Positions 17,194 through 19,313 of a stretch of 24,074 bases of DNA are shown piece after piece. A program made the position numbers and the translations under genes. Location: contig JAWQFM010000031.1 in assembly GCA_033442325.1 (NCBI GenBank), positions 392,050 through 416,123 of the forward strand, in the 5' to 3' direction. Position 1 is the stretch's first letter. The number at the start of each line of letters is the position of its first letter. This stretch comes from Salpingoeca rosetta. Its lineage: Eukaryota > Protista > Choanoflagellata. Below the pieces are notes generated by a model, which did no database searches, had not been told where the DNA came from, and saw only the letters and a program-made list of their open reading frames with translations.

Positions 17194-19313
17194 ATGAAGA
17201 CTATGCTGTTTACAGCTGCGGCGCTGCTCGTCTGCGCCTGCCTCGCTTCGGGACAGACCACCTCCACAGCACCCACGACAGATGGCTCAGGCTCTGGCAC
17301 AGGCCCCACACTGCAGACGACCACAGTACCGACGACCACGTCTACAACGATGGATGGCTCTGGCTCTGGCTCTGGCACGGGCCCCACCTTTTCATCCACG
17401 ACGACAACCACCGCCACCTGCACCTCTCTGTGCGTGGACAAGCCCAAGCCGTGCTCGCAGATCTACGATGCGCAGGCGTGCCAGGCTGAGGACGCGTGCG
17501 AGTGGGACTACACCAACTCGTGCAAGGACAAGGACCTCGGCTGCTCCAACCGCACCGTGAGTGCTCTGCGTTTGTGTCGTTGTGTGTGAGTGAGTTGGAT
17601 TGTGTGTGTGTGAGTGAGTTGGATTGTGTGTGTGTGTGTGTGTGTGTGTGTGTGTAAGCTTGATTGTGTCTGTGTGTTGAGTGCACTTGGTGCTGCTTGT
17701 GTGTCTCCTACATTTCTGTTGTCGTGCATTGGCCGGTTCTGTGTTGCTCATAAGCTGCCACGCGTCCACCCACATCTGCGTTTGCACAACAGGCTGAGGC
17801 ATGCGTGTACTACCAGCAGTGCATGGTGATCGAGGACTGCCCAACAACGACCACCACCACGACGACGACTACGACGACAACCACCACCACAACCACCACG
17901 TGCCCCTCTGTGTGCACGGAGAAGGCCAAGCCGTGCTCCCAGCTGTACGACGCTCAATCATGCAATGACAACGAGCTCTGCCAGTGGGACTACACCGGCC
18001 AGTGCATGGACATTGTCTTTGGCTGCGAGTACATTGCGGTGAGTGAGTGAGTGTGTGAGTGTGTGTGTGTGTGTGTGTGTGTGTGTGTGTGTGTGTGTGT
18101 GTGTGTGTGTGTGTGTGTGTGTGTGTGTGTGTGTGTGTGTGTGTGTGTGTGTGTGTGAGGGAGGGAGTGTGTGTGTGCTTGCTTTTGGAGTTCTCAAGGC
18201 TTGCTACACAGCTTGCTACACAGCTTGCTACACAGCTTGCTACACAGCTTGCTACACAGCTTGCTACACAGCTTTGCTACTTCCAACGACCCGTGTGTGA
18301 TGCGCCACGCTCACCAATCCCTTTGTTTGCTGTTTCCTCCTCTTCATCTTCTTCAGACCGAGAACTGCACCAGCGTCGTTGGCTGCCAGCTTGAGGAGAA
18401 CTGCCCCACGACCACGACGACAACCACCACCACCACCACATGCGAGATGGTTGGCACGTGCGAGCCCCTGAACGCGTACGCGTGCGACTACGCCTACCGC
18501 GTGGACTGCGAGGCCCACTACGGCTGCCAGTGGGACTACACCGGCTTCTGCTACGCCATGCAGCACCCATGCGTCTACATTCAGGTAAGGAGAAGGGGAC
18601 TGAACTTGCTGCGAGATGGTCCTTGTTGTTCGTGTTGTTTCTGGTCGTTGTTCGTGTTCTTCTTGTTCTTGTTGCTCGGGGTTTGTGTTTCAACTCTCCT
18701 CACCATTGCCTCCACCATGCTCACCATCATCATCATCTCCGCCACCACCACCATCATCACCACCACCACCTTTGCCACCACGAACCATTGACAGGATGAG
18801 GGCGAGTGCTCGTACAACAGCAACTGCACGTGGCACGAGGAGTGCCTTCTCAAGAACGACACCGTGCCCGACAGCACCACCCAGGGCTACACGACCACCA
18901 ACCGCCCGTACACAACAACCACCACGGAGGCAGCATACACCACCACGCCGCCCGCCTACACGACGACAACGACAACCACCAAGGCCTACACGACGGCCAC
19001 CACCACGCAGGCCTACACGACGACCAAGAAGAACGTGTACACCACGCCCAACAGCTACCCGAGGTCCACCACTGAGATTGGCCTTGGCGACCCCGTCACC
19101 ACCACCGCCAACCCCAACAACGACGCGTCCTCGGCAGCCTCCCTCTCTGGCGGCGCTGTGGCCGGCATTGTCGTGGGCGTGCTCGTGCTCGTGGCCGCCG
19201 TTGCTGCCGTCGTTGTCACCCGCAAGCGCGCCAAGTCAAACTCTGCAGACGTGACGACATCCAACGACGACGGCGTTGTGCCGCCGCCACAGACCGGGGA
19301 CAACGCCGTCTGA
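17194..19313 (+). CDS. Type I transmembrane mucin/proteoglycan-like surface protein with three 10-cysteine repeats, ~451 aa, 4 exons
   Basis: Exons 17194-17556, 17793-18038, 18357-18584, 18795-19313 (all introns phase 0). Signal peptide MKTMLFTAAALLVCACLASG, Thr-rich segments, three Cys-rich units each containing CxWDYTxxC, a YTT-repeat stalk, TM GAVAGIVVGVLVLVAAVAAVVV, stop-transfer RKRAK, and a short tail. Confidence 0.88.
18199..18270. repeat. Intronic 12-bp minisatellite (GCTTGCTACACA)x6
   Basis: Six exact copies plus a degenerate seventh, in intron 18039-18356. Confidence 0.95.

Follow-up and report, generated by a model that had tools for sequence, protein, structure and literature searches.

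In animals, the syndecan ectodomain is disordered and free of Cys, and the substitution of part-time proteoglycans with glycosaminoglycan (GAG) is only partial. The acceptor rules of the peptide O-xylosyltransferase (XT) have been described, with acidic residues being preferred, basic residues disfavoured and sites located in disordered segments (PMC5992326; PMC13038410; PMC10424144). Human XT1 requires little beyond Gly or Ala directly after the Ser and non-basic surroundings (PMC5992326), with single Glu substitutions being tolerated and acidity increasing its activity (PMC5992326; PMC13038410). In human chondroitin sulfate (CS) glycoproteomics, GSG was the top-ranked acceptor context and every known site occurred in a disordered segment (PMC10424144).

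Membrane proteoglycans of the animal kind have been reported as absent outside Metazoa (PMC3002383). In the choanoflagellate Salpingoeca rosetta, linker and CS genes have been reported and chondroitin sulfate has been measured biochemically; the bacterial chondroitinase EroS turns on mating in this organism, and it was hypothesised that the enzyme works by modifying S. rosetta proteoglycans and not via released disaccharides (10.1101/139022). Since CS is made and animal-type membrane proteoglycans are absent outside animals, some lineage-specific protein must carry it. The literature examined, the latest item being a preprint of mid-2026 about the control of mating, names no CS core protein of S. 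rosetta, which supports the original prediction on this point. With a reasoned short list of core-protein candidates, the question of the CS carrier would become open to direct tests, as tagging and knockouts are established in S. rosetta. What is added to it here is a gene that is real and expressed and whose product agrees with the acceptor rules, an XT that keeps the residues setting those rules in the human enzyme, and a candidate on contig 33 that appears stronger on its sequence.

The gene lies in a stretch of 24,074 nucleotides of S. rosetta DNA, referred to here as the window (Table 1). All three of its introns were backed by a 3989-nt spliced RNA contig (run X4), by contigs of run X6 and by raw RNA reads (X16/X17), the second intron being supported in the contigs of both X4 and X6. 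For the third intron, a joint at 18581/18792 (cut +3) was present in both reads and contigs. The library was stranded, and its first mates fell on the minus strand, which indicates a transcript of the plus strand. Expression was modest in two RNA runs, with a depth of ~5. Spikes in read depth and joints that go back were seen at 17840-17943 and 18360-18463; these are due to cross-mapping from other ACC/ACG (poly-Thr) loci, and a rearrangement is excluded.

Table 1. Features of the gene and of its predicted product, with positions in the window.
Feature	Position	Strand	Content	Basis
Whole gene	17194-19313	+	451 codons in four exons, every exon phase-0	
Coding exon 1	17194-17556	+	121 codons: signal peptide, two SG units, Thr-rich spacer, N-part of Cys repeat 1	translation; donor 17556/17557 backed by spliced contigs and reads
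Intron 1	17557-17792	+	GT..AG	
Coding exon 2	17793-18038	+		translation
Intron 2	18039-18356	+	GT..AG	
Coding exon 3	18357-18584	+		translation
Intron 3	18585-18794	+	GT..AG	
Coding exon 4	18795-19313	+		translation
Signal peptide (predicted)	17194-17253	+	residues 1-20, ending ...CLASG; Met-Lys, then 16-residue hydrophobic core	judged by eye
SG unit 1	17281-17310	+	DGSGSGTGPT, residues 30-39; Ser32 and Ser34, each before Gly	
SG unit 2	17353-17388	+	DGSGSGSGTGPT, residues 54-65; Ser56, Ser58 and Ser60, each before Gly	
Microsatellite in SG unit 2	17355-17376		perfect hexanucleotide repeat, (TGGCTC)3.7	
Cys repeat 1	N-part 17419-17556, C-part 17793-17843	+	intron 17557-17792 between the parts	repeat alignments
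Poly-Thr linker 1	17844-17900	+	19 Thr	
Cys repeat 2	N-part 17901-18038, C-part 18357-18407	+	intron 18039-18356 between the parts	repeat alignments
Poly-Thr linker 2	18408-18440	+	11 Thr	
Cys repeat 3	N-part 18441-18584, C-part 18795-18848	+	intron 18585-18794 between the parts	repeat alignments
Juxtamembrane stalk	18873-19142	+	Thr/Tyr-rich, YTTT-type repeats, 27-nt period	
Transmembrane helix	19143-19217	+	contains GGAVAGIVVG (GxxxGxxxG)	
Cytoplasmic tail and stop codon	19218-19313	+	31 residues, ending ...GDNAV	

From its hydrophobic segments, the product is predicted to have a type I topology. Long Ser/Thr/Pro-rich tracts lie between the signal peptide and the membrane anchor, the layout of a membrane mucin, with Thr making up 105 of the 451 residues and with four N-x-S/T sequons present. 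Alignments place three repeats of 10 Cys each in the ectodomain, every one of them interrupted at an equivalent position by an intron of phase 0. The Thr-rich stalks, GxxxGxxxG helix and short tail foreseen in the original prediction were all found in the translated exons, and translation returned the duplicated DGSGSG motifs at the same coordinates (17281-17388), just after the signal peptide.

Membrane-tethered mucins resemble this protein in their Thr rods (19 and 11 consecutive residues here), Thr/Tyr/Pro-rich stalk, single helix and short tail. The protein differs from them in that domains of animal mucins, such as SEA and EGF, are absent and its rods alternate with Cys modules, and its O-GalNAc glycosylation is only putative. 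Judged on these features, the gene product is on balance a type I membrane mucin and not a syndecan. The explanation that we favour, and hold to be somewhat probable, is that the choanoflagellate expresses a type I membrane mucin specific to its lineage, a heavily O- and N-glycosylated protein of the glycocalyx or of adhesion; its glycosylation, O-glycosylation included, is assumed here. From the membrane outward, such a protein would consist of the Thr/Tyr-rich stalk, three disulfide-rich 10-Cys modules set between poly-Thr rods, and a flexible, basic-free tip of ~55 residues with two D-G-S-G-S-G(-S-G)-T-G-P-T units. The Cys modules would be the binding parts, with the SG units as the young spacer.

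The overall layout had been described as syndecan-like, and this stands as far as topology is concerned, given that both syndecans and this type I protein possess a signal peptide, Ser-Gly acceptor sites near the mature N-terminus, a short tail and one helix that contains a GxxxG-type motif. An acidic-Gly-Ser-Gly core is also common to this protein and the syndecan-1 peptide that served as acceptor for XT1, PAAEGSGEQDFT (PMC5992326). The likeness does not extend to sequence homology, however. Unlike that of syndecans, the ectodomain has long rods of poly-Thr along with its three 10-Cys modules, and the tail has neither C1/C2 regions nor an EFYA end. Membership of the family was rejected on the basis of this tail, ending in ...GDNAV, and of a search of the last exon, in which no Syndecan domain (PF01034) was found at E<=10.

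Similarity and domain searches for the gene were carried out with single-exon queries, and the Cys module spans two exons. Exon by exon, Pfam returned no known domain above its cut-off, the matches being sub-threshold or compositional only. Such weak compositional matches were to Podoplanin and to glue/silk proteins, and the helix region gave weak matches to models of transmembrane regions only (CYYR1 and EphA2_TM). For the N-part of Cys repeat 1, the best match was to Paramecium_SA (PF01508; E 0.004, 18 bits), likewise an extracellular repeat that is rich in Cys and comparable in length. Membership of the Paramecium surface antigens was rejected, as this score is below the curated gathering cut-off of 21.2 and the match is confined to one repeat out of three. 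A look-alike search of the ESM Atlas with the Cys module gave nothing usable.

When exon 1 was compared with 1.84 billion representatives in a full HMMER search, no orthologue was returned; because paralogues found on contig 7 of the same genome (matching at E 1e-19) were missed too, this blank is weak evidence of absence, and the choanoflagellate coverage of the search is doubtful. The sole match to exon 1 (E 4e-4), a 765-residue repeat protein, was discarded as it had no real similarity. The contig-7 paralogues have the Cys module, stalk and helix in common with this gene and possess no SG unit after the signal peptide, and the conservation of the motif that had been proposed as a check was therefore not borne out. 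As these paralogues do without the SG unit, it is dispensable for the family.

The SG units begin 10 (unit 1) and 34 (unit 2) residues from the predicted signal-peptide cut and have a 27-nt block of DNA in common, with an identity of 25/27. Their local alignment scored 44, with 500 shuffles giving 13 +/- 2.4 and a maximum of 27, and since this score is far above the shuffles, the units are attributed to a local duplication. Together with hexanucleotide slippage, such a duplication would account for the origin of both. A rival reading is that the units have no modification-related role at all, being neutral low-complexity sequence left by slippage in a Thr-rich region. The perfect hexanucleotide repeat and the contig-7 paralogues without units are in keeping with this, as are genome-wide scans at the DNA level (55.4 Mb, 68 contigs), in which the motif was not enriched over reversed-pattern controls. 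In these scans, a loose pattern for [DE]G-x-G-x-G (522 sites vs 596 in the control) was too unspecific and was replaced by three strict patterns (24 vs 22, 39 vs 107, and 6 vs 3). However, both copies retain the full 10-residue frame D-G-S-G-S-G-T-G-P-T, beyond the SG run alone, and the D-G-S-G-S-G core is found again in unrelated Thr-rich surface proteins. The length of the SG units is also constant in the contigs of three studies, which possibly all represent one laboratory strain. We consider this purely neutral reading unlikely.

The motifs had been put forward as xylosyltransferase acceptors. All five Ser precede Gly, past the signal peptide and in a Gly/Thr/Pro-rich segment whose composition suggests disorder; each unit has an Asp at -2 of its first Ser, and residues 21-82 (~60 residues) are without Lys/Arg. 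The part of that proposal which fits less well is acidity, as the Asp is the single acidic residue of each unit and Thr or Met occupies -3/-4. The arrangement resembles sites of the bikunin, decorin and thrombomodulin type, where a protein with folded domains elsewhere has a low-complexity, non-basic stretch containing one GSG/SG serine or a small number of them (PMC5992326; PMC10424144). Animal short GSG sites usually have two to four upstream acidic residues (QEEEGSG, EDEASG; PMC5992326, PMC10424144), in contrast to the one Asp found here. On sequence, the SG units are plausible and legitimate candidate acceptors for the organism's own XT. Because of the ~60 residues without Lys/Arg, trypsin-based glycoproteomics would probably miss this tip.

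Genome scans with the Pfam models Xylo_C, Branch and Galactosyl_T gave zero matches at default threshold. The negative result for Branch was false and arose from the very small size of the exons, and a relaxed threshold with reading of the locus gave an XT orthologue on contig 10 (G000:C10), at ~1,334,900-1,337,700 of the minus strand and split into short exons. Six collinear exon pieces were identified, the best match of each being human XT1 (6EJ7), and the residues of the human acceptor cleft (K461, Q462, E529 and the W571 hairpin) are kept. Scans also identified a GT43 gene, CHGN at two loci and GT7C at eight loci. The initiating xylosyltransferase is thus encoded along with genes for linker and polymerising enzymes, and the reservation in the original prediction that the organism might lack GAG linker enzymes does not apply. 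A B3GALT6-type (Galactosyl_T) gene was not detected in the exon-wise scan, which is weak evidence given that the same kind of scan missed XT.

These enzymes and sites allow for a full- or part-time membrane CS proteoglycan, in which the GT14 xylosyltransferase would add xylose to at least one of Ser32/34/56/58/60 in the Golgi, followed by completion of the linker and polymerisation of chondroitin (0S/6S). The five Ser-Gly sites with their Asp and non-basic surroundings, the conserved cleft of XT, the biochemical presence of CS with its core protein unnamed, and the recurrence of the SG motif in the tip or stalk region of further type I mucins of the genome all point in this direction. Against this are the missing acidic patch, the absence of SG units from the contig-7 paralogues and of any orthologue from the searches, the slippage-prone microsatellite that makes up the second unit, the dense neighbouring Thr, which could be glycosylated in competition, and, more weakly, the undetected B3GALT6-type gene. 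We regard this as a tentative possibility, falling somewhat short of an even chance, and the same holds for the presence of at least part-time CS on the protein; that it carries no substantial GAG is the probable outcome. If the proteoglycan did exist, a syndecan-like design would have been built independently of animals from lineage-specific parts, and there would be a molecular handle on the way in which a bacterial chondroitinase triggers mating in a choanoflagellate.

The favoured reading as a membrane mucin is also supported by the distribution of the motif, which is not confined to this gene. Genome-wide, 55 DNA sites were found that could encode [DE]GSGSG in one frame or another. At least three further surface mucin-like genes possess the same motif, giving at least four motif-bearing surface proteins with this one included, and other SG-tipped type I mucins occur on contig 33 and contig 9. 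As several other Thr-rich surface proteins have it, the SG motif is a recurrent trait of the mucins of this organism and no hallmark of a single protein. The proposal of this protein as a candidate GAG carrier thus survives in that it fits the acceptor rules and the enzymes are encoded, but not as a unique candidate. It is possible, though doubtful, that the five Ser-Gly serines of the tip carry CS, in which case this protein and the mucins of contig 33 and contig 9 would be some of the earliest core proteins of proteoglycans to be identified in an organism other than an animal. Far less probable still, and in our view very unlikely, is that this particular protein is the carrier on which EroS acts, with the cutting of its chondroitin required to trigger swarming and mating. 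Beyond the points given for a CS proteoglycan, nothing more favours it than the published hypothesis of EroS acting on proteoglycans (10.1101/139022), and the several motif-bearing surface proteins, the far stronger acid-flanked cluster on contig 33, the modest expression in the two RNA runs and the absence of any link of the gene to mating all argue against it. Only two loci in the genome have two [DE]GSGSG sites within 100 nt, namely this gene and the one on contig 33. The latter has an acid-flanked cluster with eight Ser-Gly acceptor serines and is, on its sequence, the stronger and far more canonical GAG candidate.

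The gene that carries the two Ser-Gly (SG) units is real and expressed. Both units were reproduced by translation with the letters and positions of the original prediction, within an exon 1 that is stop-free over 121 residues (see table). The frame is carried on past GT..AG introns into exons 2-4, with all three introns in phase 0 and the summed exons giving 451 codons. RNA was mapped over window 16800-19900 using two raw RNA-seq runs and two Logan contig sets. A contig of 3989 nt from run X4 covers 16800-17556, 17793-18034, 18356-18581 and 18792-19888 with zero mismatches, so all three predicted introns are spliced out (joint ambiguity 1-4 nt), and the same joints occur in contigs of X6, a run from a different study. 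Joints 1 and 3 are visible in the raw reads of X16 and X17, whose first mates are nearly all of the minus strand, the usual mark of plus-strand RNA in a stranded library; depth over the gene in these runs is modest (about 1-6) and coverage stops near 19500. No glycosyltransferase gene adjoining it was found among the neighbours.

RNA depth spikes about ten-fold at 17840-17943 and 18360-18463, the two poly-Thr coding runs. Joints at both runs that went back or skipped about 510 were rejected as artefacts, other ACC/ACG repeat loci cross-mapping there. At their 5' ends, introns 1 and 2 have extended (GT)n/(GTGT)n tracts (34.8 GTGT copies at 18039-18177), intron 2 also holds 6.8 copies of the 12-mer GCTTGCTACACA (18199-18280), and the 3' end of intron 3 has a CAC/CAT-rich run in place of a pyrimidine tract.

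Coordinates of the mucin gene, its neighbours, its paralogues, other candidate genes and the xylosyltransferase-like gene (C, contig of the S. rosetta genome G000; L, fetched genome locus; bare positions refer to the window, G000:C31:392050-416123)
Feature	Location	Strand	Remarks
Exon 1	17194-17556	+
Residues 1-20			Met-Lys then 16-residue hydrophobic core; exon 1 translation
SG unit 1	17281-17310	+	DGSGSGTGPT; residues 30-39; inside Thr-rich segment
SG unit 2	17353-17388	+	DGSGSGSGTGPT; residues 54-65; inside Thr-rich segment
Intron 1	17557-17792	+
Exon 2	17793-18038	+
Intron 2	18039-18356	+
Exon 3	18357-18584	+
Intron 3	18585-18794	+
Exon 4	18795-19313	+
Downstream neighbour	20839-21741	+	Peptidase_M24 domain; separate transcript, start near 19721
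Other neighbour	6461-7564	-	Adenylate/guanylate cyclase catalytic domain, 51.8 bits; within large minus-strand gene
Contig-7 paralogue	G000:C7:273,000-283,000	-	L008
Contig-7 paralogue	G000:C7:315,000-325,000	+	L007, broken by N stretches
Contig-33 candidate	G000:C33 about 240,000-244,700	-	L067 frames 4056-3145 and 2617-548 (-); L063
Contig-9 candidate	G000:C9 about 422,600-424,100	-	L069 frame 4577-3171 (-)
Contig-23 candidate	G000:C23:227680	+	L022, L068
XT-like gene	G000:C10 about 1,334,900-1,337,700	-	Peptide O-xylosyltransferase, GT14, XT1-like
XT-like gene pieces	L014: 5199-5092, 4845-4738, 4607-4503, 4103-3993, 3803-3624, 3411-3325, 3156-3082, 2931-2845, 2554-2465	-
XT-like pieces matched to 6EJ7			Chain 119-153 (E 6.5e-5), 223-255 (0.005), 255-302 (2.5e-12), 309-331 (0.24), 338-357 (0.003), 356-376 (5e-6)

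Its hydrophobic segments suggest that the product is a type I membrane mucin, whose binding modules would be lineage-specific. C-terminal to the SG tip, the N-terminal segment holding both units, are three copies of a Cys-rich module, each interrupted by an intron at an identical position. Alignment of the copies showed that the C-x-W-D-Y-T core is invariant among the N-parts, which have six or seven Cys each, and that the C-parts are 17 residues long with three Cys. The modules are spaced by 19-Thr and 11-Thr runs, and the last exon encodes a Thr/Tyr/Pro-rich stalk, a helix with GGAVAGIVVG and a 31-residue tail ending in GDNAV; four N-x-S/T sequons are present. All searches and alignments used one exon at a time, and in Pfam no single exon gave a domain above cut-off. 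The top match, which aligned module 1 to the Paramecium surface antigen repeat, was sub-threshold (18 bits against a cut-off of 21.2) and the remainder were compositional or helix-only. Membership of the Syndecan family was rejected, with zero Syndecan matches at E<=10.

The alternative proposed in the original prediction is that this protein is a glycosaminoglycan (GAG)-bearing proteoglycan core. S. rosetta produces chondroitin in unsulfated and 6-sulfated form but no heparan sulfate, and has homologues of the linker and chondroitin sulfate (CS) enzymes (10.1101/139022; 10.1101/211789). Profile scans of the genome returned CHGN at two loci, one GT43 gene and eight GT7C loci, with no match to GT14 'Branch' or Xylo_C at the default threshold. 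Relaxing the threshold gave one 16-bit Branch candidate on contig 10, the location of a gene resembling human xylosyltransferase 1 (XT1). This gene consists of nine or more very short exons, was missed by Pfam six-frame scans at normal thresholds and gave no detectable Xylo_C domain, and the best solved-structure match of each of six collinear pieces was human XT1 (PDB 6EJ7; residue = chain index + 208, the Trp at index 363 being W571). It retains R-K-Q-G (K461, Q462), A-E-S (E529) and the hairpin C-K-C-Q...V-D-W-C-G-C-S-P-N including W571, parts which shape the peptide cleft according to Briggs and Hohenester (PMC5992326), the K461/Q462 constriction forcing Gly or Ala after the acceptor Ser (PMC5992326). 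Given these conserved cleft residues, the S. rosetta enzyme probably follows the human acceptor rule, and the objection that GAG linker enzymes might be lacking falls away.

By that rule the fit of the SG units is mixed. All five serines stand in a G-S-G context, Asp opens each unit, and residues 21-82 contain no Lys or Arg. In human CS glycoproteomics GSG ranked over SG, acidic residues were mainly N-terminal of the Ser and 100% of sites lay within disordered or low-complexity segments (PMC10424144); basic residues at any position reduce xylosyltransferase activity (PMC13038410). Acidity is the weak point, with one Asp in each unit against three or four acidic residues in bikunin or decorin; single Glu substitutions in XT1 acceptor peptides had little effect (PMC5992326). 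GAG glycosylation is not predictable from any consensus sequence (PMC13038410), and the SG motif is permissive for attachment, not diagnostic of it. As about 60 residues at the tip have no tryptic site, standard glycoproteomics would probably overlook it.

Units 1 and 2 have a 27-nt block in common, identical at 25 of 27 positions, which scored 44 against 13 +/- 2.4 (maximum 27) in 500 shuffles, indicating local duplication of the entire D-G-S-G-S-G-T-G-P-T unit. The additional Ser-Gly of unit 2 falls within a perfect (TGGCTC)3.7 microsatellite, so that slippage accounts for the length difference. A census of the 55.4 Mb genome (68 contigs) with three strict DNA patterns, covering both strands and every frame, found 55 sites able to encode [DE]GSGSG (10 + 39 + 6 by pattern). 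These patterns were not enriched genome-wide over reversed-pattern controls, and there is therefore no genomic over-use of the motif at the DNA level. Site pairs less than 100 nt apart occur at just two loci, the mucin gene and one on contig 33.

Searching the genome with exon 1 identified two near-identical paralogues on contig 7 (E 1e-19 and 1e-9), oppositely oriented with about 45 kb between them, which have in common with the mucin gene a 10-Cys module, the stalk and a nearly identical helix. The SG motif is not conserved at L008, the paralogue with a readable N-terminus, where a Thr-rich segment runs straight into the first Cys module; long Pro-rich TTTPSPPPPPPP repeats are also found at this locus. 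A full HMMER search of exon 1 against 1.84 billion representatives returned a single hit, a repeat protein judged spurious. The same library failed to return the contig-7 paralogues, so it evidently lacks the proteins of this genome and its choanoflagellate coverage may be incomplete, making the statement that no orthologue is known provisional. Val is the last residue of every tail in the family (...DNAV, ...DDNV and ...VQTV, the paralogue ends being taken from open frames alone), and these tails might act as PDZ-type ligands.

The remaining 53 [DE]GSGSG sites were all fetched and read. Approximately half lie in short or implausible frames and several in sequence that is acidic or rich in Gly, where nothing nearby is Thr-rich or points to a membrane protein, while three (contigs 33, 9 and 23) occur in Thr-rich surface-protein contexts resembling the mucin gene, which is thus not the sole core-protein candidate. 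The contig-33 candidate, modelled from genomic frames rather than RNA, has a signal-peptide-like exon and then eight Ser-Gly serines in short runs spaced by Asp-Asp-Met or Val-Asp-Asp, followed by a long poly-Thr tract and a helix, GGAIAGIVIG. Its open frame of about 690 residues starts upstream of the helix and extends past it to a stop, and would thus be mostly cytoplasmic tail. By published criteria this cluster is predicted to be clearly the better acceptor. On contig 9, a single open frame has a type I mucin layout, in which a signal peptide precedes Thr-rich tracts that surround a cluster starting GDGSGSGSSGSGSG, and these are followed by a helix with a basic stop-transfer C-terminal to it. 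Neither candidate contains a Pfam domain. On contig 23, DGSGSGS stands amid Thr-rich tracts in an open frame that extends for more than 2000 codons.

The proteoglycan-core proposal thus survives as a reasonable hypothesis, strengthened by the conserved xylosyltransferase cleft and weakened by low acidity, a young slippage-driven origin, absence from the paralogues and non-uniqueness. On balance we lean towards a mucin that serves the glycocalyx or adhesion and in which GAG chains have no major attachment site at the SG tip; substitution of the tip with CS for at least part of the time is a serious contender, with a somewhat lower than even chance. EroS, the bacterial chondroitin lyase that triggers mating, probably works through altered proteoglycans, the core protein being left unnamed (10.1101/139022; 10.1101/211789), and that this mucin is the relevant carrier seems very improbable. 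The helix motif GGA[VI]AGIV[VI]G is common to the mucin gene, its contig-7 paralogues and the unrelated contig-33 candidate.
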